NCBI GenBank assembly: GCA_047495785.1
Contig: JBLDXI010000054.1
Coordinates: 310,001 to 374,000, forward strand
Length of the DNA stretch: 64,000 nt
Origin: Lepidodermella squamata
Lineage: Eukaryota > Animalia > Gastrotricha
Direction: 5' to 3'
The notes beneath the pieces were generated by a model. The model ran no database searches, was not told the DNA's origin, and saw only the letters and a list, made by a program, of their open reading frames with translations. Of this stretch, positions 2,497-59,909 are shown in pieces (position 1 is the first letter of the stretch; each line of letters begins with the position of its first letter). Position numbers and translations under genes: made by a program.

Positions 2497-4870
2497 ATGA
2501 TTGCTAAGATAGCACTCCTCCCCTTCGCGCTTCTTCCGCTAAGTCTAGCTATGAAGCAAGTCATAACATCGAAAATGGACAATTCCAAGTCCTCAATTAG
2601 GCCAAAGATAAGTTTACTCTTCGAAGTAGCTTACAGCGGCCCAATAGGCAGCGGGAATTTGGCTACTGAAGCGATTCAAATCGCCCTTGATCGACTGCGT
2701 TCAATGCAGAACTGGCTACCAAATTATGACGTTGAATTCGAGTTTATTGACGATCAAGGCGAAGATGCTGTTTCGATTTATGAGTTCGTCAAGCGATTGT
2801 ACTTCGATGCGGATTCAGAGGCTAGTTTTCCCCTGATGGCTCTACACGAGGCTGCAACTCGACCTCAAGAATTGCAGGCTTTGATGCTCAAACCCCTGAA
2901 TTATATTGGCGTAAATCAAAGAATTTCCACGGCATAAAATGATCTTTCATTTATTTTAGGTGGCAAACTATATCAGCTCGCTCAAGCTGACTACCGATCG
3001 ATTCAAGTATTCTAATTTTTTCGGGCTTGGAGAGAGGGCAGATTACTTCAGCGCCGGGGTCGCTAGTTTTGTTCGAAAAATGAATTGGAATACGGTAGGA
3101 ATAGTCTCAGAAATCGATCCAACCTGGAATGTGTTCGACCGATGGTTTGTCCAATATTTTGAAGCTAATCATGTCAAAATCGCCCAGCTTTCGAAATTTT
3201 GGTTGGAAGATTCCCAGAGCACAGATGATGCGTTCACCGAGCTTAAGTCCAGTAAATCTCGTATCATTTTAGCTGTTACATGGGACAACGTTTTTGCTAG
3301 CTGTTGGCTACATCGATTCGGCCTCTTCGGACCTAATTTCGTCATAATTTTCGGAGCCTGGTTACAGTTTGATGAAAATTCTCCAATCCCGGAACATCTG
3401 CACTGGTGTAATCAATCATCAATTATTGAAGTTTTAAAGAGCTCTTTCCTTTACGTTGATCGAACCCTAGAGGATGCGTATGGAGTTAGTTCAACGAAAG
3501 ATGTGACTGGTTTCTCTTCAAAAGAACTTGAGAAAGAAATGAGCTTAAGATTCAATGAATATCACACTTCCCCAGTTCCTTACCCATTTTATGAGCGAAC
3601 CCTTTTCATGGGCCTCATTCTCAACCATACAGAGGCAATTCTTAATATAAGAGGCCAAACTCTATCGAATTGGACGACAAACAAGGCCTTGTTCCAGCAA
3701 AATGGATCGAAAATCGTTTCTGTAATGAAAGAGGCTGTGTTAAGGACTGAATTCACTGGTTTGAAAGGAATCTACAAATTCGACCCTCATACTATGCTTT
3801 CAGTGGGAGGTCAGCCAATTGCGTTTTCCCAGATTAAATTCGAGAATAACCAATCCGTTCAGTGCGTTGGGGCCAACTATCTATCCTGGTTGAATGATTC
3901 TATTGTTATGAAGGCTGACTGCCCTTTTGTCTGGCAAACCAAGTCGAAGCTGCCTCCGAGGGGTGAAATTTCTGTTATCGAGGTTAAGCAATCCCTTTTG
4001 ACTAGTGAAGCTGATATAGCTCTCAAGACTATTGCCGGCATTCTCATTGCAGTCCATTTTTGTCTGTTTTTCACTAATAGAGCCGAAACCACTTATCTTA
4101 GGAGAGTGGGTATCTTCGGGAATATCCTCATGGTCAGTCACGTTTTTCTGATACCTTCAAGTTGGTCAGAGGATATTGGGAAATACTTCTCAGCCCTGAT
4201 TTTTCTGGTAATCTCAGGATTTTCAACAATATGGATAGCGACCTTTTTTGGACTTGAAACTCTTCATACTCAGGTTCGTAGCGTGGCGAAATTGTGTGTT
4301 CGCTTTTCGGACCAGCAGCGAATAGCCGTTAAACTCCATTCAGTAGTTAAAAAATTGAGCTCAAAGCAAATTTTTATTGCAACAGTGATTTTAGCTGCGA
4401 TACATGCGATTTTTACTACAATTTTGCTGGCCCTAAACCCAATTCGGAAGCTAAACGTTCTAGCTCAAGTCATTTCGATTCCTGACGAAGATGTATTGCT
4501 GCGAATCATCCGAAATGAAGTCTCAGTTCTCGCTTCTCTAACAGCTTCGAATGGAGAGAAAATCATGATGTCCATCATAATTACTCCACTGATTTTGATA
4601 ATCATTAGATCGGTGTACTTGGCGAAGCAACGCGGCATTCATGGTAACAAGCCGCTGGCATTTTGCACGTTCTGCTCCGCCAGTGTCATTGTTGGCGGAA
4701 TTCTGGTTGCTGTAACACAGGCCTCGAATGGCCGGAATCTCATGATTTCAGTGTCATCAGTTGTTCTCTGCCTGAGTTTCATCAATGCTATTACCTTTGC
4801 TTCCGGCTTACCAATGCGATGTTTTCGTCATATTAATAGGCGACGGGTAACTAGTTCTACGCCAAAATGA
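2497..4870 (+). CDS. Class C GPCR, divergent GABA-B-receptor-like (Venus flytrap + 7TM); exons 2497-2910 and 2960-4870, ~774 aa
   Basis: Signal peptide MIAKIALLPFALLPLSLA; ANF-receptor-like motifs (AIQIALDRL..WLPNY, DRFKYSNFF, MNWNTVGIV, SKSRIIL, FTGLKGIYKFD); 49-bp phase-0 intron 2911-2959 (gtaaat..ttttag) joins the two ORFs in frame; multiple C-terminal hydrophobic helices; no Cys-rich domain. Confidence 0.8.
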
Positions 4871-13177: not shown

Positions 13178-16100
13178 ATGGCCGCAATAATTGTCAATGA
13201 AACATCGGCATCCAGCACCCAGCCGCTCACCGAGCTGTCGCTAAATCACGAAAATCTCGTCGACGACGAGAGAGACTCAAGCGAACAACGGCTGATCGTC
13301 AACGCGACGCTCGACTCGCCGAACCATGTCGAAAATAATTCGGCGGCATCGATCGATCACGTCAAAATCGAAGTGTCGAACAACCACGAATCGGTCAATC
13401 GCCACCACTCAGTCCAACTTCTCGACAGTAATTCAGCCGTGAAAAATCACCGAAAGCAACGAAGATCGGTCCCGGCTGTTATGACGACGCAAAACGCGCT
13501 CGTCGCCGAGTTGAAGGACGTGCTGAGGCGAAAGTCGAAATTTGTCGAGGTCGTGCCAGACCGGGACGGCATGTCGCCGGAGGACGGCTTCGACGAGGAC
13601 GAAGACAACAATTTCGAGGACGAAGGCGCCGAATTTTCCGGCGATGACTTGGATGATTTGAACCATGTCGCGTCGTCGCCGGAGACGAGTCGGAATAACG
13701 CGGCCGCCTCGCCGTTTTTTAACGGCTCGTCGTCCGGCTCGACGTCGGGCGCGGCGAGTGCCGTTGAAGTGGCAACGGCTACGGCGAAATCGCCTGTGCC
13801 CATGATGCAGATGGTTCGCGTTGTTCGCTGTGCGATTATCGGCGATGAGGCGGATCAGTTTTTCGCCGATTGCCTCAACGCGAATCACTCGAGTAAACGA
13901 ACGTTCGAAATTCAACACGACGGTGCTTTGGTAAATTTCTTTCGATAATTTTTTATTCGATGTTTTTTTACGAATTTTTAAAAATTAATATGATTTTTTC
14001 GCAATATTTATCGGGACATTAAATCGCGAAAATTTCGTCGATTTATGTAACGCTGAATTTGTTCGTCTAGCAATGATTTTAGTGGGGAGATTACCCAAAA
14101 TTCGAAAATTGTCATTTAATTTTTTGAAATTTTTGAAATGTCGATGTGTGGCAATTTTTTTTTATTTTTCGCTTGGAAATTTTACAACAGTTCCTAAAAT
14201 CTATGGCATATTTGGATATTTAATTTAGAATAATTTTTTTATATTGACCCGGAATATATTTCAGGGATCTGTTCATTTTTTGGGATGGTTATTTAAAAGA
14301 AATGAAATTTAAAATTAAAATTATGATTACTCGGGTATTTTTTTCTTCGGTGTGTTTTCCATTTTTTCTGAATTTTCCGGATTCGTTCCATCATGGATCC
14401 ATTGAAATATTCAACTCGGTAAAACTTTCGCATTTTTTTGGGTTGGAAGTTAGAAGCTTGAATTTCAAAGCCCAATTCTGACTATTTTTCAAATTCCTTG
14501 ATTTGCAAAATTTACAATTATTTCCTGGATTTTTCATTGGTTGTTGGATCTTGATAATTTGAAGCTTTGCTTTAGCCAATTTTCATTCAATTTAATTTGA
14601 TTTAATCATAATTTAATTTGACCGAAATGGGAACTAAATTCAGAACAATTCAAAAAAGCCTTTTTCGAAGGCGAATTTAGTTTCAAAATTGATGCAAAAT
14701 TAATGCAAAAAATTAAAATTTAATGACCAATATTTCAAGAAAATTTCAAGATTTTCTAGTTTCTAAAATTTTAAAATGTTACCGATCCTACAAGAAATGT
14801 GTTACAAGTCTTGAAAAATGTCCCATGACAGAATCAGCCATCCACAAGTTCATGAATGACATCCTTGTTACGACCTCACGATTTTAGAATTTTATTTTTT
14901 AATTTCAGGTAAATGTGCAAATAGTGGCGGTGATTGGCGTTGAGAATCGGGACGAGTTGCCGCGTTTCCGCGTCGGTAACTCCAACTGCGATGTCTTTCT
15001 GACCGTGTTCAAGGACGAAGCCAGCCTCAAAGACCTATGGCTACCACAGGTTCGTTCACTTCAAACTCTTTTTTGAATTATTCTGGAATATTTTTTCCGA
15101 CTTTATTTCGGAAACTACTTTTTCGTGCAGCATTTTCAATTTTCTATGCAGCAAAAATTTTCTTAAATCGCATGTTCGAATATTTCCGCGAAATTGAAGC
15201 TAATCATGTATTCTATAGTGAAGAGTGCGATTTAAACAGAATTTCACGCTGAATTCAAAGATAATTTTTTTTTAATTTTTCCACTCAATCTTGACATCCT
15301 TTAAAGCTTCGAAAACTGGGTTTTAGGCCCGTTGTAAATTCCAAAATGATTAAAAATAATTTGTAAATCTAAAGTAAGACGCTTTAAAATTGTCGAAAAT
15401 TGAAAGCTATTTTATATAGCTTGAATAAGTTAATTTGGGCGAATAGAAAGCGATTTTCACGAATGTCTTAATGTCTATAACCAGTTGGGATATAGGTTTC
15501 GCCCATCGTACTTGGCCTATTAACAAAGAGCTGTATACATATAGGCGAGGTCATAGCTGTCCAGGCAGTCGGCACCCTTTGCACCAAGACATGGGTGAAT
15601 CGTTCCCAAGAACACCTTGAACCACCCAAGAACAATTCACCCACATTGATAGCACCTCTCGGCATTACCATATTTAGGCTTGGCATGCACACGGATGCCC
15701 GGTCGCAGTTCTAAATATTCCTATGTATAAAGATCCGAGAGCCACGATACGTAAACTTGGATTCCACGAGAGTATAGAGTTCACTGGCTTTGACTGGCTG
15801 GTTCCGAGTTGGGCCACGGCCTTTGAGAAGACTTCGTCGAACTCACTTACTGACCTTGTTGGCTGGTTCCGAGAAGATGTCGCTGGATTGTCCGGTTCAG
15901 GCTCGCTGATAGATTTTGAAGTACCTGGCAAAGCTTCTCCAGTAAGCGAAATCGAGAGCACTGAGTTGTAGTATTCAAAAATCATCACTTCGCATTTTTC
16001 GATGTTTAAAACCAGGCGCCATTGCTCGCACGGTGGCGTCCAGTTGAGCTTAAATTCGGCGGGTTCAATCGAGCAGCGACTTGCCAAAGGCCCAGTTCAC

Positions 16101-16734
16101 GGCTTCGTCGGGCGGCATTCCCATCGCCGTGAAAAAGATGAAAAGCTGTGGGCTCAGCGGTGACCTTGAGGTACACCGCAGCAGATCGGGTGTTCTTCGC
16201 TGATTTTCATTTTTTGCTGCATTAAAAAGTTGAAATGCTGCTGTCCCACATTTCCATTAATTTGTTGTGGCAAAAATCGAAAAAAATTTGCTCGAAATTG
16301 CTGGAATAATTGATGATTTTTTTTCCTAATTTTAGCTTCGACGGATAAATAACGAAATGCCAATCGTGATGGCGGGCGGTTTGCCGCAGCCGGACGGCCG
16401 CAACCTCGCGCAACAGGTGGGCGCGCGCGACTACGTCGACCTGACCGCCTCGGGTGACCACAAGCCCGTCTTCGAAAGCGTCGTCGCCGCGATTCTCGGC
16501 CCGCCGCGCCGCCGCCCGGCCTCGTCCGAGATGGCCCCACCCCAACAACAGAACGGCCTCGTCGAAATCGACCTGGAACCGCCGCCGGCGAAAGCGCCCG
16601 CCACCCTCGCCTCACCGCCCCCACTCGCGCACACGGTTGAAAATTTGAACCCGAATCCGCCTCAAAATTTAAATTCCCAACAGCAACAACAACAGCAGAA
16701 AAAGGCGAACAAGTGTTGCTGTGTAATTTCTTAA
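13178..16734 (+). CDS. Atypical Rho-family small-GTPase-like protein (probable pseudo-GTPase) with long N-terminal extension and CAAX; exons 13178-13930, 14909-15049, 16336-16734, ~430 aa
   Basis: Two phase-0 GT-AG introns join the exons in frame. Rho-fold landmarks: VRCAIIGD, DGALVNVQI, CDVFLTVF, LWLPQLRR...PIVMAG, GRNLAQQVGARDYVDLTA, KPVFESVVAAIL. Ends KKANKCCCVIS* (CAAX = CVIS). Confidence 0.8.
15470..16210 (-). mobile_element. Degraded non-LTR retrotransposon (LINE) RT fragment inside intron 2 of the Rho-like gene
   Basis: Minus-strand remnants GVPQG..PLSPQLFIFFT (RT motif) and CEQWRLVLNIEKCEVMIF (RT C-terminal motif), broken by frameshifts and stops; boundaries approximate. Confidence 0.7.
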
Positions 16735-28771: not shown

Positions 28772-29617
28772 ATGTTTTCCCCTCAAGCCGTGTTCTTTGC
28801 TTTGGTGCTAGGTTCAGTCAACTGCTGCCCGCACAACAGCGTTGGCTACCTGGCATCGAACAACACCGATAACGCCGGATCAGTTGTCGATGTCAGTGAC
28901 ATACTGTCGTTCTACGAAACTGGTAGTAGCAGCTCTTCAAAAGCCATCATCATCGCGACCGATGTCTACGGTTGGAACGGCGGCCGAACGAGGCAGATTG
29001 CGGACTACTTCGCCACGAGAGGGTTCTACGTCATGGTACCGAAGTTGCTACAACCGCCCTTCGAAGGCGGGACAGATGGAGATGGTCTGCCTTCGAATTT
29101 TTCATTCAGCAGATTTGCCGCACTCAACGCTTACTTGGCTAACATTACCTGGGAGGGGACAGTTAAACCTCGTGTTGAACAAGCAATCGCTAGAGCCAAG
29201 TCATTCAGCATTCCGAAAATTGGCATGCTCGGGTTCTGTTGGGGCGGTTGGGTGGTCACAAAAGCTGCCATTGATTTCGAAAACGATTTGACAGCCGTGG
29301 CTACAGCTCATCCTTCATTCCAGATAGAGGAAGCTAGTTTCAAACGAAACGTGACTCAGATGATAGGCAAGGTGAAGATTCCGTCGCTTTGGCTGCCGGC
29401 TTCGAATGATCCGCCTGCTCTGCTGGAGAATGGGGCTTTGTTCAAAACGCTGAAGACCAGTAGCCCGGCTTCTAAGGTGATCTTCTTCCCGCGGATGCAA
29501 CATGGCTGGGTTCCGAGGAGCGATATTACAAACGCGACTATTAAAGCTGATGTTGAAAAGGCTGTTAACGACGTCGCTTCCTTTTTCAATGACCTCATGG
29601 ATTCTGAAGATGAATGA
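28772..29617 (+). CDS. Dienelactone hydrolase family (alpha/beta hydrolase, CMBL-like), copy 1, predicted secreted
   Basis: DVYGW, RQIADYFA, nucleophile motif GFCWGG, AHPS, ASND, MQHGWVPR; hydrophobic leader MFSPQAVFFALVLGSVNC; intronless coding region. Confidence 0.9.
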   Translation: MFSPQAVFFALVLGSVNCCPHNSVGYLASNNTDNAGSVVDVSDILSFYETGSSSSSKAIIIATDVYGWNGGRTRQIADYFATRGFYVMVPKLLQPPFEGGTDGDGLPSNFSFSRFAALNAYLANITWEGTVKPRVEQAIARAKSFSIPKIGMLGFCWGGWVVTKAAIDFENDLTAVATAHPSFQIEEASFKRNVTQMIGKVKIPSLWLPASNDPPALLENGALFKTLKTSSPASKVIFFPRMQHGWVPRSDITNATIKADVEKAVNDVASFFNDLMDSEDE

Positions 29618-42318: not shown

Positions 42319-44775
42319 GGCCGGCCGACACAATAGCTAATCCACAATAGCGAATCCACAATAGCACGCGACTAAATAGCGAGAATATAGTGGTAACCAT
42401 TATAGCGAGCGACTTAATAGCAAACAAGAAATAGCGCGCGACACAATAGCGAAAATATTAAGATAACCGAAATAGCCAACAACATAATACCGATTTTAAC
42501 CATCTCGCGCCCATATTTTTATTTTTTCAAAATTAAAAGCTAGTTTCGCTTAACATTAAGCCAACGAGATATCTCGTCCAAAAACGTAATGCTCGATTTT
42601 AGAGAGTAAGTAGGCGTAAGTTTCATCAGAGCCTCGTTAGCGGCCAAATATTTTTTTTCGGAGCATCGCGAGACGTCGCGGCAGAGTCGAAAGTCGGCTA
42701 CCCTTTCCTCCATCAGGTTCTGCTCCTTTTGAAGACCCATGATGAGGCGCCACAGATGCGGGTGGTTCTTGGCATTGCTGGCCGTGAATTGCTGATGCCA
42801 AGCCTCGTGATAGTTGTCGGTGCGAGGTAGCGAATTTTCCACGCGCTTCACCATGTTCCAGAGCTCGAAGTCAAATTCCGGAGGGACGCTTTGCTGGCCG
42901 TGTCGCCACACGCCGATCCAATTCTTCTCGAAGTATTGGTAGAGCTCTGCCATTTTCGGGTACTTTGCCACGACAGCCGCGAGATCGGCATCGAGAAGGG
43001 CGAAAACACGGGGCACCTCGCAAGTCGGGACGAACGCCAGTGCCACGAGGCGTTTGATGCGAACTCGCACCTCTTCATCGTCCGAGTAGACTAGTTTCAG
43101 CCCAAGAACGCAGGTGTGCCTCCAAACACATTGCGCAAGGTGAAAGACACAACCCGATAGGAGGCAGTTAGGGAAGACGATGATGATAGCTTCGATAACG
43201 GCCTTCTCGAAATCGACCATCCAGGTGATAGGCGACAACGTTGGACACACTGATCGAAGCTTGTTAAACAGTAGACAGTAGGCATCTTTCGTTTTTCGCT
43301 TCAACAAAGCATAGACAACTGGAATCGTAGTAGTTCGCTTGCTTATTTGTTGAGGCGTTGAACCAGTCGACTCAGCGGGGCGGGGCTTGAGCAACACGTG
43401 AATTGTGTACAGCTGGTAGTACATATCCGGCGAAGCCTCGAAGGTGCCATCCGACGACCAGTCGCGGAACTCGCCCATGAGATGAATGAACTCCATAGAG
43501 GCGAACACCAGGACGCGCTCAGGATCTTCCTTGCCGGAGTCATGCAGTAGAAAGGGCGCCCCTCGCGAGGTGATACAAAGCGAGTCCGGAACCGCATCAA
43601 ACTCATTAGTCGCAGCGGGTTCCTTTGGTACGTCGGCTCTAAGCTTCTTACGCACGCGCTCGAGTGCCTTTTGAGTTGACCTAGCCGATGGTAAACACGT
43701 GGTCACGCTGAGCGGGACACCAATTGTAGCATCTTGACGAATGTCGCGGTGGTTGCCTCTTGAGTCCAGTGCTTTATCCTAAAATAAACAAATCAAATAA
43801 AGTCAATTAAAATGAATTAAAATAAATCCTCACCTTCATATGCGCAACGAAGTCATGTGCTTCCATAGCTTGCGGGTCAGGCTCGTGGTTGTGGTCTCGC
43901 CATGATTCGCGATCAACGGACAGTACAGCGCCATCGGGGCCATCCCTAGTTTTAGCAGTCGCGCGGCAATTCGAGGTGACGCACTTCCAATTACCCGTAA
44001 TTTCTTTCGTCGTTGGTCGAAAGCGATAGCCGTAAGCGATGACATGGCGCTTGCCACGCTGCGACGTAGTGTAACGAATGGGCACAGGGGTGATTCGAGT
44101 GACTTGAGGCTGAGCCGGTTCCACCTCACCTTCGCTTGATGATGAGCTCGATGATGGTTCCTCCGCTTCATCCTCGCTGTATTCGTATTCCTCGTCGGCT
44201 GCCTGCAGCTCGAGATCTTCGGCGATAGCACGCGTGAGATCGAAGTCAACATCCTCATCGTCAACCTCATCACCGAAGACACCGTAGACTGCAGCAGTTG
44301 CCAGCAGATGACCCTCATTTTGTTGCTGTTGATTGCCCTGCTGATCATCGTTCACGGCTGCCGGCTGAGTTTCGACTAAAAAAGTAATAATTAAAATATG
44401 CATATATAGAAATAATAATAATAATACCTTTGTGCTTTCGCGATACATGGATTTTCAAGCCTCTGGACGATGAGCTTTGGAATTCACAGCCGTCAACTTG
44501 ACACGGAAACATTTTCGCCTCGTAATAAAAAAGGCGAGCAAATTGCCGTTTAAAAGCAATGATGCGCGTGCTCACCTTACCCGCACGTGTTTTATTCCGC
44601 GCGTGGCTATTCGCTATAGCGTCGCTCTCTATTGTGTCGCAACATAATATTTCGCTATTAAGTCGCGTGCTATTTCGGCCCGCCTTAATTTTCGCTATTA
44701 GGTCGCTTTCTATTTTGTGCCTCGCTATTTCGGGTGTTCTCGCTATTGTGTCGCATTCTATTGTGTCGCCCGGCC
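42319..44775 (-). mobile_element. Full-length Mutator-like (MULE) DNA transposon, 2457 bp
   Basis: TIRs GGCCGG(C/G)CGACACAATAG; perfect 8-bp TSD CGCCTTTC (42311-42318, 44776-44783); subterminal AATAGCG arrays at both ends. Confidence 0.93.
42540..44512 (-). CDS. MULE transposase with N-terminal C2H2 finger and FLYWCH-like domain; exons 44512-44428, 44375-43834, 43778-42540, ~621 aa
   Basis: CQVDGC..HVSRKH; YRF..WKCVTSNCRATA..HNH; catalytic SDGTF, VDFEKA, GCVFH, RTDNYHEAWH; 52- and 55-bp GT-AG introns give one open frame. Confidence 0.9.
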
Positions 44776-48269: not shown

Positions 48270-51143
48270 CTAGCCTATGAAGTCGGGCAGAGGACCACGA
48301 GGAAGTCTGTTGCTCAACAGCACGAAGGGCGAGCGCGGAGGGGGGCGGGCCATCAGGCGGACGCTCTCGAGGTCCTCGCGCAGCGGCAGGACAAACTGAG
48401 CGGCTTTGGCGACATAACGGCGCTGGCACTGTTCCAGAAACCGAGGGACACTCGGGATGCGGCAACGAGATTCCAACTCCGACACGCGGACCCTGTCGTC
48501 CCGACGAATGTGGAGCATTGCACGCAGGCTATCATTTTGGATGACTGCGAGACGAGTAAGCTGTTGCTTCGAGGCGGTAGCCAGACAAATGGTTCCATAA
48601 GACCAGCACGAACGGACCAGAGTCAAGTAAAGGGTGCGGCGCCAGCGGCGCGACAGCCCAGGGGTGAACATGAGATGTTTGAAAAAACCCAGATTTCTGC
48701 GGCAACGGTCAGAGACCTTGTCCACATGAACTTTCCACGTCAGTTTAGGGTCCAAGTGAACACCAAGAACTCGTAACGACTCGACTTGCGGAATTACGGC
48801 GCCGTTGAGCCTAACATCAACGGACGCGTTACCAAAGGGCATAACTTCGCTCTTCGCGGGATTAAACTTCTGTCGCCACTTCTTGGCCCATCCGGAAATA
48901 CGGGTGAGCTCCAATTGGAGGCGGCGCTGAGCAGCAGGGAACGTGCCACCCTCACCGACCACAGTTAGATCGTCCGCGTAGGCCTGCAGCAACGTGCCAT
49001 CCGCGCTTGGGGCGGACAGCAAATCGGCGGTGTACAGAATGTAGAGAAGCGGCGACAACGGGGAACCCTGCGGCACCCCGCAATGGACGACGACTTGACG
49101 ACTCAGCGAGCCCGCCACGCGAGCTTGCAGACGACGGTCGCGAAGATAGTCGGCCAGCCAGCCGACCAAATTTCGCGGGAGAGGCAGCTGGGCCAGCTTA
49201 TGGACCAGCCCGGCGTGCCACACGGAATCGTAGGCCGCCTGAACATCCAAGCCGGCCACGACAGTCTTCTTGCGCAGGGAGCGGTTGACGTGGACGCGAT
49301 GAACGATGCGAAGTGGGACATCTGGCGCGGAATGGTGCGGACGGAATGCAAACTGATTCTCAGGGAGAAGGTGTTGACTTTCGAGAAACTGGGTCATCCA
49401 CCGAGCCACGATCGACTCCAGGAGCTTGGCGTCAGTCGGCAGCAAGGAGATGGGACGCTGTGACGAGACATGGTTCTGCGGCTTGCCGGCCTTTGGGATA
49501 GGCACAACAACCGCTTCTTTCCACGCTTGAGGCACGTAGCGACTGCCAAGAGACATGTTGAACAGCCGACGAAGGTGGGTTTGCAGGACAGGGCCACCCC
49601 ACTTCAGGTAGATGTTTTGAATACCATCCAAGCCAGGGGCCTTGAAGGACTTTAAACGGCTAACAGCATCAGCGAGCATCCGTTGACTGACAGAAAACTC
49701 GCCGAGAGCAGGCAAGCGGATCACATCGGAAGCACGAAGGGCAGGATCTGCAACGACATCGTCCTCGACTTGTTGCCACCACTGGCGAGTGGCAGCGTCC
49801 GCATCGGGGTCGACGTAGGGCGACATCGGTTTGACGAAATGATCAAGCAGTGTATCAGCAAGGGCAGTAGAAGGCGGCAGGACACTGCCATCATCGAGCT
49901 TCATGTAGGTCAGGCGATCAACAGGGGTAGGGCGAAACTTATCGAGACGACGGAGGCGGGCATAAGCCTCTCGGTAGCGGTGCTGGAACGACAGAGCTTC
50001 AACATATCGCAGGTTGGAGATATCCCGCCGCAATTGCTGAGCCGCTTTCGCAGCGCGGAACTGGGCGTCCAAGGCGTTGATCCTATCGACAAGCCCGGCA
50101 TCAACTCGATTGCCGAGCCCACGTTCAAGAATCCTCTTTCTTTCGAGCAGGCTACGCATGTCGCGGGTCATTGAAACTTTCCTCAGCTGAGTGCGGTCGA
50201 GCAGAGGGACGTGAACACGGCGAGATTCGGCGATTGCCGCACCAACCTGGCGCCGATACGAGTCGATCCGAATCACTGGGTCGCCGACATTAGGCAGCGG
50301 GATTTCGGACAGCAGCCGGATCAGGGTACGAGAGAATCCAAAACGATCGGCTCTGGAGATGTCGTAGCGAGGAGCAGGGTCCACGAGTTCGTAGACGTGA
50401 GCAGGGCCAGAGCCGGACGGAAGACGAACCCTGACAGACGTGCAGAAGTGATCGCTGCTAAGTCGGTCGCCAACAGACACGCCACCATCGAGAAGGCGAA
50501 GCGCCGCGTCGTTGACAATCCAGATATCGAGCGTAGACAGGGTCTTGTGAGCTTTCGACAGGTGCGTGGGAGGCGAGGAGAGAACAGTCAGACCGAGACG
50601 GGTGACGAAATGATGGACGGAATAGCCGTGAGGGTTCCATAAATCGTGGGACTGTGAACCCCACAGTGGAGACTTGCCATTGAGATCCCCGCTAAAGATA
50701 CAGGGGAGGCCGGAGGCGGAGGCCCCAGCGAACTCGGTTTCCAAGAAGCTGAGATCCAAGGACGACGTCGGCGGACAGTAGCCGGTAAGAAGACGAACAA
50801 CAGACGAGCCAGCGAAAGGGACAGCATCCAAAGCGAGCCACTCACTAAGCTTGCGACCAGTCAGAGCCAGCCGCCGCTCGGCGACCACGAGAGCGCCCTC
50901 CCGAACAAACAGAGCAGCGCCGCCACGAGCGCCGTTGAGCAACAGATCCTCGGAGTCCTGTACCCGATCACAACGAAAAATTGCATAATCCCTAGAGGTT
51001 ACACGCAAAAGAGAGAAAAGAAAGGATTCACTTATGAAAAGAGCAAAGGGTTTATAAGTCTCTAGCTGTTGACAAGTTTCAGCTTCCTTGCCGGGGAGGC
51101 CGCACGGATTCCATTGTAGTAGCGTACGCAGCGTATTAGCCAT
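48270..51143 (-). CDS. LINE ORF2 (APE endonuclease + reverse transcriptase), ~957 aa
   Basis: QWNPCGL, ISESF, GDLNGKSPLWGS, SSDHF; KAPGLDGI, RPISLL, AAYDSVWH, GVPQGSPLSPLLY, YADD, LGVHLD; ATG overlaps the ORF1 stop (ATGGCTAA). No RNase H recognised. Confidence 0.93.
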   Translation of the reverse strand: MANTLRTLLQWNPCGLPGKEAETCQQLETYKPFALFISESFLFSLLRVTSRDYAIFRCDRVQDSEDLLLNGARGGAALFVREGALVVAERRLALTGRKLSEWLALDAVPFAGSSVVRLLTGYCPPTSSLDLSFLETEFAGASASGLPCIFSGDLNGKSPLWGSQSHDLWNPHGYSVHHFVTRLGLTVLSSPPTHLSKAHKTLSTLDIWIVNDAALRLLDGGVSVGDRLSSDHFCTSVRVRLPSGSGPAHVYELVDPAPRYDISRADRFGFSRTLIRLLSEIPLPNVGDPVIRIDSYRRQVGAAIAESRRVHVPLLDRTQLRKVSMTRDMRSLLERKRILERGLGNRVDAGLVDRINALDAQFRAAKAAQQLRRDISNLRYVEALSFQHRYREAYARLRRLDKFRPTPVDRLTYMKLDDGSVLPPSTALADTLLDHFVKPMSPYVDPDADAATRQWWQQVEDDVVADPALRASDVIRLPALGEFSVSQRMLADAVSRLKSFKAPGLDGIQNIYLKWGGPVLQTHLRRLFNMSLGSRYVPQAWKEAVVVPIPKAGKPQNHVSSQRPISLLPTDAKLLESIVARWMTQFLESQHLLPENQFAFRPHHSAPDVPLRIVHRVHVNRSLRKKTVVAGLDVQAAYDSVWHAGLVHKLAQLPLPRNLVGWLADYLRDRRLQARVAGSLSRQVVVHCGVPQGSPLSPLLYILYTADLLSAPSADGTLLQAYADDLTVVGEGGTFPAAQRRLQLELTRISGWAKKWRQKFNPAKSEVMPFGNASVDVRLNGAVIPQVESLRVLGVHLDPKLTWKVHVDKVSDRCRRNLGFFKHLMFTPGLSRRWRRTLYLTLVRSCWSYGTICLATASKQQLTRLAVIQNDSLRAMLHIRRDDRVRVSELESRCRIPSVPRFLEQCQRRYVAKAAQFVLPLREDLESVRLMARPPPRSPFVLLSNRLPRGPLPDFIG

Positions 51144-52647
51144 TACGGGTCGAGCTGGTTTGTGGCGGCAGCGGGGAGGCGAAGAGCCGGTCGAATAAGC
51201 GTCCGACAGTGTCGAGTCGGCGCTCGAAAGCGGCTTCCATACGCTGGAACCGCTCTTCCATAAGACTAAAGAGCCGGGCGCCATCGGGCGACAGAAAGTG
51301 ACCGCGGAGTGCAGGATTAACAGGCGGAGTAGCAGGAGGCACCCACGACGGAGAAGTGGATGACCACGGAGCAGGCGTTGGTCCGCCGACAAAGTCACGG
51401 GTGGAGAGAAAGTGCGTGGGGCCACCCCGTAGGTGCTCGGGGACCTTCGCTTGTTGACGACGCTTTTCACGTTCGGCGGCTTTCGCTTCACGGGCGACGG
51501 CGATGGCACGGCGACGGGCCACCTCGTCAGCCTGGGCGGTCTTGAACGCAGGGCAGCCCCGCCACGAACCAGAATGATGAGGCTCACCGCCGCCACTGCA
51601 GTGGGGGCAACGACGATCTTCAGGCTCAGCGAGACAGGTGGAAATCGTGTGATCAGTCGCAGCACAGCGGCTGCATCGTTGCGTGGTGTCCGGAGAACAA
51701 TCGACAGCGACATGGCCGTAAGCGGCGCACTTCAGACAGGTAGGCGGGAGAGCCGTGCTTTTCAACTTGTGGACTTTAATGCGACGATTCAGAAACTTGA
51801 CACCGTTAGCCATGGCATCCTCGTAATGCTCAGCCGATCGAAAGACGAGCACCATCGGCGACGTCTGCTTACCAGGGAGCGGGGGAATCTCGCGGATTTC
51901 CTCGATATACTCGGGCCGGAAAAGGGGGCGCAGAGTATCGCCAGTGTAACAGGAGGGCAGGCGGTAGCATATGGCCGAGCGTTTGTCTTTCAAAATGCGA
52001 TCTGATTCGGTCACAGTCGGGTCAGGCCGGCCCGGATAGTGAATGCGGAAGTCTGAGTCGCGAAACGCACCCTTAGGGAAGCCGGTACGCTTGAGTAGCT
52101 TGTCAGCGTCCGTCGCAGTGGCGCACTTCACGCGGAGGCCGCCGCTGCTCATGACATCGACCGCGACGGGCGCCAGCCATGGCGCAACGCGGACCAACTC
52201 TGGCTCGAGCTCTCCACGAGTCATGCCAGTGACGCGGTCGATTATCACGACCTTGTAGTTGACAGGCGCCTCTTGAGGTCCAATAGACGGGTGGGGAGCA
52301 GATGTACGAGTCGGGGGCGGAGGCGGCGGGTCTTCCTTGCGCGCCACTTTACGCTTGGGCGACGCTTGCTGCCAGGGCTGGTTCGACGCCCCGCTTGACG
52401 ACGGGGGTGGGGAGGAAGGTGGACTGTCAACAGACATCTGAAGGTCACCGAACGAAGACAGGTGAGGAGGGGACTGCCCAGTCGGCGGGCAGGGAGACGA
52501 CGGAACGGTGTCAGCATTCTCCGAGCGTAACTGCTGGATTAGCTGCATGACGAGAGCAACTTGATCGACCGTAAGATCGTCGACCCGCAGCTTCTTCGCT
52601 CGCTCTTCGACAGTCATTCCAAATGGCTTCTTCGCTGGTGTAGCCAT
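51136..52647 (-). CDS. LINE ORF1 (gag-like, three CCHC-type knuckles)
   Basis: First ATG at 52647 (MATPAKK); CLKCAAYGHVAVDC, CSRCAATDHTISTC, CPHC..H..C. Confidence 0.9.
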   Translation of the reverse strand: MATPAKKPFGMTVEERAKKLRVDDLTVDQVALVMQLIQQLRSENADTVPSSPCPPTGQSPPHLSSFGDLQMSVDSPPSSPPPSSSGASNQPWQQASPKRKVARKEDPPPPPPTRTSAPHPSIGPQEAPVNYKVVIIDRVTGMTRGELEPELVRVAPWLAPVAVDVMSSGGLRVKCATATDADKLLKRTGFPKGAFRDSDFRIHYPGRPDPTVTESDRILKDKRSAICYRLPSCYTGDTLRPLFRPEYIEEIREIPPLPGKQTSPMVLVFRSAEHYEDAMANGVKFLNRRIKVHKLKSTALPPTCLKCAAYGHVAVDCSPDTTQRCSRCAATDHTISTCLAEPEDRRCPHCSGGGEPHHSGSWRGCPAFKTAQADEVARRRAIAVAREAKAAEREKRRQQAKVPEHLRGGPTHFLSTRDFVGGPTPAPWSSTSPSWVPPATPPVNPALRGHFLSPDGARLFSLMEERFQRMEAAFERRLDTVGRLFDRLFASPLPPQTSSTRNG

Positions 52648-57780: not shown

Positions 57781-59090
57781 TGTCGTTCGAGTACTTACTT
57801 CTAGTTCAAGCCATCGGTTCAATCAATAAACGTGAGATGCATGTTGCGCTAAGGGGACCTTCAACAAAATGGAACTACCTTCTCACTTCCTAAAAGGCGC
57901 CCATCAGAGAGCGAAGTAGGACAGCATAACTGGTTAGGATAAGGAAAATCGACATAGGGTCACCCCCTGGTCTTTGACTGAGTTCACCTTGCGGACTGAT
58001 CGAACTGGTACGGATGATCCCTACCATCCTAAGCGGTACTTCGCTCTTTGGTGCCCAACTTCAAAGCGAAAATAAACTTCCTAGAGTCGAACGATCCTTG
58101 TGAATTATTGCCGAGAATATATATTTCGCAAATTAAAAACAGTTTTTCCCTTTACTCGATGTTCTATTCAAAAGTGATCCAGACCTTAGATTACGATAAT
58201 AATACTGTACTATCGGCCTGAGAAAAAAACTAATGCGGCCGGCAAGGTGGGCTCTCAATAAGCTCTCAATAGAAGGGCGTACATTTTTCTCCAACACTAT
58301 CCCGGGTGCTTGAATATATAAAGTAATTTTAGCTTTGGCGGTCTTAGCTTTCAAATCTCTTTTATTGTACAGCATTTCACACTTGACGAAACTCTGCATT
58401 CAAGACTTAAACCACGTACATATCCACGAGTTTCAGTCATTCTTTCTGCTGTCATTATTCGACTGCTTTTCAACAACTCAGCCTTATTTGAGCAAGCCAG
58501 GTTGTGTTTTTTATCGATTCAAACAGATGACATATCCAAGTATTGAACCTATCTTTAATCAATATTACGTTTAAAACTACCTCAAGCGAGTAGAATTAGC
58601 TCATTTTTGCGAGTAGCAGAATGAGAATTGCGTCTATCGCTTTCAACTGGCCTGTAAATGAATGCTCGTTTCAAAAAACTTCAAAAAGTCTTTTAATGTG
58701 GCAAGGGATTTTGCACAATGCTTCTTCTTACACGCTGTAGCTTCAACCAAAATCATTGCTGCAATGATTTTTGCTACAATATCATCTTGGTGCCCTCGAC
58801 GCTACCCTGAACCCTGAACTGCATTATATTTCTTCCTTTTATCTAATCATGAAAACTCATGGCCAAGAACTCTTTATCTTCCGTAAAACTATTTCCCTTT
58901 ACCTCATTGAATGTGATTAAATACTGTTTGCTCGCCAGTTACGGTGCTACTTTTGCATCAGAATCCACGATGGTTCAGAAAAACGGGCTAACATGATCAT
59001 AGGTTCCATCGCACTGAGGAACAAACAAATTCCCTGATCCATCGCTTTCGAATCTCAAAGACATCTTTTTCACTCTCTTAGGTGATATTA

Positions 59091-59909
59091 ATGGCTTCTG
59101 ACGCAACTTCTGCCACATGCTGCCCGGCGAACAGCCACGGCTACTTGGCGTCCAGCAATACCGATAACGCCGGATCAGTAGTCAATGCAAGTGAAACGTT
59201 TTCGTTTTACGAAACTGGTAGTAGCAGTTCAGCAAAGGCTGTCATTATCGCCCCTGATGTTTTTGGATGGAACGGCGGCCGAACGAGGCAGATTGCGGAC
59301 TACTTCGCCTCAAAAGGGTTCTACGTCGTGGTGCCCAAACTGTTGCAACCACCGTTTGAAGGCGGGACAGATGGCGATGGTCTACCTCCGAATTTTTTAT
59401 TCAGTACTAGGTTTGCTGAAGTCAAGAGTTACTTGAGAGAACTAACCTGGGAGAGCACCGTCAAACCTCGCATTGAACAGGCTATCGCTAGAATCAAATC
59501 TTTGAATATCACGAAAATTACCATGCTTGGATTCTGTTGGGGCGGTTGGGTTGTAACGAAAGCTGCCGTAGATTTTGCACCAGATTTAACATGTGTGGCT
59601 TCGGCACATCCTTCCTTGAATGCAGAACAGAATTTCAATCGAAATTTGGAGGACATGATTAACGAGGTAAAGATTCCATCGCTGTGGTTACCAGCTTCAA
59701 ATGACCCATCCGAACTGTTGGAGGACGGGGCGTGGTTCAAATTACTGATACAGAGCAGCCCGGCGTCTAAGGTAATTCCGTTCCCGCGAATGCAACACGG
59801 ATGGGTTTCGAGGGGTGATGTTACCAACGCAGCTATCAAAGAGGACGTTGAAAAAGCAATAAACGTCGTCACAGATTTTATCAACGAATGCATTGATAGT
59901 AAAAAGTGA
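59091..59909 (+). CDS. Dienelactone hydrolase family, copy 2 (no signal peptide), 272 aa
   Basis: ATG at 59091 (GTG at 59082 follows an acceptor-like AG); GFCWGG, ASND, MQHGW intact. Confidence 0.9.
   Translation: MASDATSATCCPANSHGYLASSNTDNAGSVVNASETFSFYETGSSSSAKAVIIAPDVFGWNGGRTRQIADYFASKGFYVVVPKLLQPPFEGGTDGDGLPPNFLFSTRFAEVKSYLRELTWESTVKPRIEQAIARIKSLNITKITMLGFCWGGWVVTKAAVDFAPDLTCVASAHPSLNAEQNFNRNLEDMINEVKIPSLWLPASNDPSELLEDGAWFKLLIQSSPASKVIPFPRMQHGWVSRGDVTNAAIKEDVEKAINVVTDFINECIDSKK

Follow-up and report, generated by a model that had tools for sequence, protein, structure and literature searches.

Pseudo-GTPases are a small and recently recognised class of proteins, whose mode of signalling in the absence of a nucleotide switch is still being worked out. 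Among the atypical or pseudo members of the Rho family (RhoU/RhoV, Rnd, RhoH, RhoBTB), RhoU is said to carry extra N-terminal sequence for partner binding. Stand-alone acidic ligands of Arp2/3, of the Arpin/cortactin type, have no WH2, recruit or inhibit rather than activate, and rely on the Trp of a DDW/EW motif. In the central-acidic (CA) region of N-WASP, residues I463, V464, L467 and M471 face the Arps and the conserved Trp of the A region is crucial for Arp2/3 binding, and the C helix of WASP docks intramolecularly on the GTPase-binding domain (GBD), then on Arp2/3 (PMC7274804). The F-actin-binding (FAB) segment of VASP has been proposed to be WH2-like (PMC3034019). Here, we compare with these systems a gene of the gastrotrich Lepidodermella squamata that lies in a 64,000-nucleotide stretch of contig JBLDXI010000054.1 (positions 310,001 to 374,000, assembly GCA_047495785.1), hereafter the window, and that encodes a degenerate Rac-like protein with a long N-terminal arm carrying a short basic helix followed by an acidic tract. 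All coordinates of this gene are window positions on the forward strand.

A first-pass annotation of positions 13490-13660 had described a dead Rho on a membrane anchor, preceded by an amphipathic helix with a basic end and by an acidic tract with Phe in place of Trp, an order compared there with the WASP CA module and with the VASP FAB helix. These positions correspond to residues 105-161, in frame of the open reading frame (ORF) starting at 13178. Both strings are present: QNALVAELKDVLRRKSKF covers residues 105-122 and the acidic run EDGFDEDEDNNFEDEGAEFSGDDLDD begins at residue 135, with the twelve residues VEVVPDRDGMSP between them. The gene consists of three exons (13178-13930, 14909-15049 and 16336-16734) separated by introns that are all GT..AG, and its product of 430 residues ends in KKANKCCCVIS. 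Exon 1 is a single uninterrupted frame that runs from Met1 through the motif and includes the strand-helix-strand unit with which the G-like domain begins, and the same holds for the homologue described below; the fusion of the motif to the G-like domain is thus certain at the ORF level and is no artefact of the gene model. The reads give no proof of transcription, as all the data are contigs and no run is on record as RNA; run X2 (labelled “RNA?”) covers parts of exons 1 and 3 only, and DNA of a diverged relative is an equally possible source.

In all the collections searched, the sole relative of this protein is represented by four nearly identical sequences (P0001-P0004) that form one cluster and come from metagenome contigs of the European Nucleotide Archive (L001-L003). 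Word-index searches with exon 1, the motif region or exon 3 returned the P0001 cluster or nothing, and an exhaustive profile search of 1.84 billion protein representatives returned P0001 only; no relative was found in the JGI metagenome contigs by a protein-pattern scan and a back-translated DNA-pattern scan, and a feature search of the ESM Atlas gave no usable match. Conservation was therefore measured between two species only, the window gene and this metagenome homologue, after both genes had been spliced locally, and the two were compared region by region.

Exon 1 is 38% identical to P0001 overall. The identity amounts to 26% over residues 1-100, 100% (27/27) over residues 101-127, 17% over residues 128-162, which form the acidic tract, 80% over residues 163-172, 16% over residues 173-210 and 53% over the G-like domain. 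No other part of the protein is as well conserved as the invariant block of residues 101-127, VMTTQNALVAELKDVLRRKSKFVEVVP (13478..13558), which contains the helix. Within this block, the two genes differ by 17 synonymous nucleotide changes in 14 of the 27 codons, including TCG/AGC for Ser and CGA/AGG for Arg, with zero replacements. Constraint at the nucleotide level is ruled out, as synonymous sites differ freely, and the fixation of 27 residues out of 27 despite 14 synonymously changed codons indicates a constraint on the protein, not on the DNA. A second allele or copy of the gene, present in the DNA run X1, displays 27 synonymous versus 6 replacement differences from the window gene (the two changes of codon 86 counted as one), with zero replacements in residues 93-395 and no allelic difference at all in 13460-13545. 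Judged from these comparisons, the motif is genuine and under strong protein-level selection, on an orphan pseudo-Rac, and we predict that the block is very probably a real, selected docking motif.

The acidic tract that follows (residues 128-162; 13559..13663) has a net charge of about -16 and contains 17 Asp/Glu in 35 residues together with three Phe, against 14 in 31 and three aromatics in the homologue; it thus keeps its composition and not its sequence. The alignment, which is soft in such sequence, shows no change at F138, F146 and S154. The first-pass annotation had proposed, as its own check, that the motif be conserved against a variable background: this is what we observe for the helix, whose block is identical at every position when the flanking arm is at 16-26%, whereas for the acidic tract only the composition is retained. 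Just upstream of the block lies a basic cluster, RKQRR (residues 92-96; 13451..13465), which aligns with KKRRAK in the homologue. Two further conserved islands are found in the arm, QPLxELSxNxEN (residues 15-26; 13220..13255), defined by the invariant columns of the two-species alignment, and HVxxSPETSR (residues 163-172; 13664..13693), with 8 of 10 residues identical and an SP site at 167. Their presence suggests, at the level of the alignment, that the arm holds several short binding motifs. A scan for common short-motif patterns found RRKS (a basophilic-kinase-type site at S120, within the block), VEVV, a CK2-type Ser at 154 and the SP at 167 to be conserved in both species; by the same scan and by inspection, patterns of the CRIB, GoLoco, LIR, AP-2, clathrin, WIRS, EVH1-ligand and SH3-ligand types are either missing or not shared by the two species.

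The arm extends over ~210 residues before the G-like domain and is mostly disordered. In two AlphaFold runs with shallow alignments, its only helix falls on the motif, at residues 104-119 of the window protein (13487..13534) and 98-113 of P0001, the rest of the arm being coil; the predicted local distance difference test (pLDDT) is low here, and its mean over each of the two models is 38. The prediction of an amphipathic helix with a basic end also draws on the hydrophobic moment and on the conserved RRKS site, whose S120 comes directly after the helix. The six 18-residue stretches of the protein with the highest helical hydrophobic moment all start at residues 106-112 and span the helix and the hydrophobic stretch FVEVV that follows it (residues 122-126; 13541..13555). 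L108, V109, L112, V115, L116 and F122 lie on one side of the helix and K113, R117, R118 and K121 on the other, with 5 Lys/Arg versus 2 Asp/Glu and a net charge of about +3. The amphipathic helix claimed by the first-pass annotation is thus borne out as the most amphipathic stretch of the protein, and predicted helical. FVEVV is a possible strand: a short VEV strand follows the helix in the P0001 model, one of the two, and the conserved VEVV fits a SUMO-interaction-type core.

The domain that carries this arm has lost its nucleotide-binding motifs. Exon 1 (residues 1-251; 13178..13930), an open frame from its ATG to a GT donor at 13931 and colinear with P0001, encodes the full N-terminal arm and the G-like domain from strand 1 through helix 1 to strand 2; exon 2 (residues 252-298; 14909..15049), bounded by AG/GT splice sites, encodes strand 3 to helix 3, with DxxG lost; the first part of exon 3 (residues 299-357; 16336..16512), supported by Rac/RhoG matches and by an exon junction placed as in L001, encodes the end of the domain. 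In both species, the G-like region lacks all three of GxxxxGK[ST] (G1), DxxG (G3) and [NT]KxD (G4), and GDEADQFF and AGGLP occupy the places of lost nucleotide-binding motifs. In the alignment with Rac chains, AGGLP takes the position expected of the G4 motif and of the Rho insert, with ~22 residues lost around these two elements. A hidden G4 exon in the 1.3-kb intron 2 is ruled out, as the homologue has the same junction with an intron of 245 bases.

Pfam Ras models gave no match to any exon piece or to P0001, and phmmer and profile searches of the PDB gave none for the first two thirds of the G domain. The last third matches the Rac-like chains ARAC7, Rac3, Rac1 and RhoG, always at their residues 140-183 (E 0.01-1.4); this match is found with the single sequence as well as with the two-species profile, and extends into a common LGPP(R) end. 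A TPR match in the Rac-profile search of the PDB is an artefact that sums weak repeats. The order of strands and helices in the low-confidence models fits a G domain. Downstream, a Pro/Gln-rich tail (16513..16734) leads to KKANK, CCCVIS and the stop codon, with the CAAX box at 16720-16731; the contigs of the homologue stop before this point. A Rac-derived, nucleotide-blind and CAAX-tagged host domain is a fair reading of this weak and consistent evidence, and the dead Rho on a membrane anchor proposed by the first-pass annotation stands in this form.

We then compared the motif with the CA regions of N-WASP (PDB 9dlx_H) and WAVE1 (PDB 3p8c_D). The best ungapped match of the 18-residue N-WASP C region in the protein is to residues 107-124, with a BLOSUM62 score of 31 that 0.08% of protein shuffles reach (p 0.0008), a value that overstates the weight of the match, the comparison having been chosen after the sequence was seen. 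Of the 57,347 stop-free 18-residue stretches in the six-frame translation of the window, this one ranks first, and the runner-up reaches a score of 23. In the ungapped register, I463, V464, L467 and M471 of N-WASP map to L108, V109, L112 and L116, and KRSK of N-WASP is aligned with RKSK of the motif. The full N-WASP CA aligns colinearly (helix, 8-residue gap, acidic tract), with scores of 57 for the window protein and 65 for the homologue, whole-protein shuffles flattering the acidic part of such an alignment. The likeness to WASP/N-WASP CA thus comprises an amphipathic helix of four turns with the same hydrophobic spacing and a basic K/R-S-K end, and an acidic tract with aromatics ~15-25 residues downstream of the helix. 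The differences are equally clear. The motif stands in an N-terminal arm instead of at the C-terminus, which argues against membership in the WASP CA family, the 12-residue spacer VEVVPDRDGMSP separates helix and tract, no Trp and no preceding WH2 are present, and there is no statistical homology.

From this resemblance, a mechanism can be proposed. The helix would be a docking element of the WASP-C/WH2 class, whose L108, V109, L112, V115 and L116 face would enter the hydrophobic cleft of Arp2, Arp3 or actin, all proteins of the actin fold. The acidic tract would provide a loose tether of electrostatic nature, and S120 in RRKS would be a phosphorylation switch. With no WH2 to deliver actin, the outcome would be recruitment or sequestration of Arp2/3 or actin at the membrane and not activation of nucleation, so that the protein would act like a CA peptide without belonging to the WASP family.

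Several observations weigh against this proposal, besides the after-the-fact choice of the comparison. No Trp occurs in the arm of either species, the only one being in the G domain (W295; W279 in the homologue), and three Phe stand in the tract, for which the first-pass annotation had noted Phe rather than Trp; a pattern scan found no Phe with acidic neighbours on either flank at once. For WH2, there is no Pfam match at E up to 10, and the arm contains no L[KR][KR][TV] pattern. The C region of WAVE1 fails to align with the block (p 0.66), so that the likeness is to N-WASP alone. With the motif as query, phmmer gave 0 matches in the PDB at E up to 10, and Pfam gave no credible family for the motif region or the exon pieces. 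The models have the low mean pLDDT given above, two species alone are available, and all faces of the helix are invariant, which binding to a one-sided cleft does not require. Overall, by the features tested, the motif is not a member of the WASP CA family; what the alignment supports is a pattern-level resemblance to an N-WASP C helix followed by a tether of acidic residues. The resemblance to WASP CA claimed by the first-pass annotation therefore holds for the helix, with its four Arp-facing residues, and for the aromatic acidic tract after it, and does not extend to the Trp, to WH2, to WAVE1 or to any relation in the PDB or Pfam.

CA-like docking on an actin fold at the membrane, taken as a whole, is accordingly a tentative proposal, possible rather than probable. 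An actin-fold partner, be it Arp2/3 or actin, is by itself doubtful though worth holding, and a CA-like function towards actin or Arp2/3 is plausible, somewhere between doubtful and possible. Its most elaborate form would be a farnesyl-anchored, nucleotide-blind descendant of Rac with its own N-WASP-type C helix and Phe for Trp, collapsing the relay from GTPase to WASP/WAVE into one constitutive, phosphorylation-gated protein; this we regard as improbable.

The comparison with the other systems gives similarly partial likenesses. With the EVH2 FAB and G-actin-binding (GAB) segments of Ena/VASP, the motif has in common a hydrophobic helix that runs into an RR/K cluster with a Ser/Thr kinase site. 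The ungapped score with a FAB sequence of VASP is ~24, a provisional value, as the probe matched no PDB chain. In contrast to Ena/VASP, the window protein has no EVH1, no proline-rich region and no tetramerisation coil, and Pfam gave no WH2, EVH1 or VASP_tetra match. Moreover, LRRKS runs on from the helix without a spacer, unlike the helix-spacer-LKK[TV] arrangement of WH2. The Arpin/cortactin-type ligands are alike in having an acidic tail without an actin-delivering WH2, and differ in their Trp. With the atypical and pseudo Rho-family proteins, the window protein has in common a probable Rho fold, a lipid anchor, a lost or relaxed nucleotide switch and an N-terminal extension. It differs from them in that G1, G3, G4 and the Rho insert are all gone, that Pfam Ras models do not match, that the arm is a helix and acidic module and not a set of proline-rich SH3 ligands, and that no orthologue was found among the 1.84 billion representatives.

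Other readings of the block have to be set against docking on an actin fold. The partner may be one that the sequence does not reveal, such as a kinase, a scaffold, an importin reached via the two basic clusters, or a lipid, with no link to actin. No search returned a relative or a family match that would name a partner, and the islands at residues 15-26 and 163-172, suggestive of several short binding motifs, fit such a partner. As a hypothesis this reading is not a positive one, and it would reduce the N-WASP-like register to a coincidence; we consider it a real possibility, if short of an even one.

The second reading is intramolecular: the helix and FVEVV would dock on the nucleotide-free G-like domain of the protein itself, on the former switch/effector face or on the region of the deleted G4 and insert, and would stabilise or mask the domain. 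Phosphorylation of S120 or competition by the acidic tract would release the docked helix, and a second, external partner would be compatible with this arrangement, for which the docking of the WASP C helix on the GBD before Arp2/3 offers a precedent (PMC7274804). The block is fixed at all of its positions, including those with polar residues, as expected of a buried or doubly used segment, and this fits a segment that is wrapped by its partner or used twice, for instance one that docks on the G domain of the same protein and is later released. The ~22 residues missing around G4 and the insert, and the VEV strand predicted after the helix in the P0001 model, point in the same direction. Against it, the block and strand 1 are ~85 residues of low complexity apart, the AlphaFold runs, made with partial G domains and of low confidence, give no contact information, and covariation is not measurable from two sequences. 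On balance, we find intramolecular docking rather unlikely.

The block may also be a site for calmodulin, or for another reader of basic amphipathic helices, switched by a basophilic kinase. Precedents are the calmodulin-binding extensions of the RGK and Ral GTPases and the tail of K-Ras4B. The hydrophobic anchors fall at 1-8-14 (V109, L116, F122), the helix combines its positive charge with the top hydrophobic moment of the protein, and the conserved RRKS lies within the site; this pattern is nevertheless loose and common, and it leaves the invariance of VMTTQN and the acidic tract unexplained; we regard this reading as improbable. Finally, pairing of a VEVV strand and its Ser/acidic tract with SUMO or a ubiquitin-like fold, the helix having a separate role, is very improbable: VEVV is conserved, the acidic tract that comes after it contains a CK2-type Ser (S154) that is conserved too, and one model predicts a strand at VEV, but a core of four residues will often arise by chance, the acidic run begins only after PDRDGMSP, and the helix, the most conserved part, is left unexplained.

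The gene also varies in its introns. Intron 1 (978 bases, 13931-14908) is absent from the homologue, where exons 1 and 2 are continuous (L001 2300-2450), and intron 2 measures 1286 bases in the window gene versus 245 in the homologue. In run X1, the second version of the gene is ~2.5-fold deeper, with exons 95-99% identical to those of the window gene; 311 and 607 bases of intron 1 are missing from it (13953-14895), and over intron 2 (15057-16319) it is wholly divergent. This pattern looks like haplotypes or homeologues that differ in intron content, as read from the contigs. Within intron 2, positions 15208-15331 have a contig depth of ~405 versus ~44 around them, which points to a dispersed repeat, and the ORFs of this intron have no credible Pfam family. 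Elsewhere in the window, 39-1628 and 2960-4870 hold long stretches, each in a single exon, that encode parts of a Cys-loop ligand-gated channel and of a ligand-binding protein of the ANF-receptor type, and that show the genome to be that of an animal with few introns. Two paralogous, intron-free dienelactone-hydrolase ORFs lie ~30 kb apart at 28772-29617 and 59082-59909 (Pfam DLH, E 5e-21 and 5e-20). On the reverse strand, we found a MULE transposase ORF (42540-43706) and a GC-rich LINE-type ORF of 1147 residues with endonuclease and reverse transcriptase domains (48270-51713).

One element of 27 residues under near-absolute selection, on the disordered arm of a membrane-anchored dead Rac, offers a clean handle on pseudo-GTPase signalling, and the block peptide is short enough for direct biochemistry. 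If the block binds Arp2/3 or actin, this would be the first Rho-family protein with its own effector-output module and, in the case of Arp2/3, a ligand of that complex without the canonical Trp; if it binds another partner or its own G domain instead, it would still illustrate a way in which the RRKS site can bring a dead switch under control.

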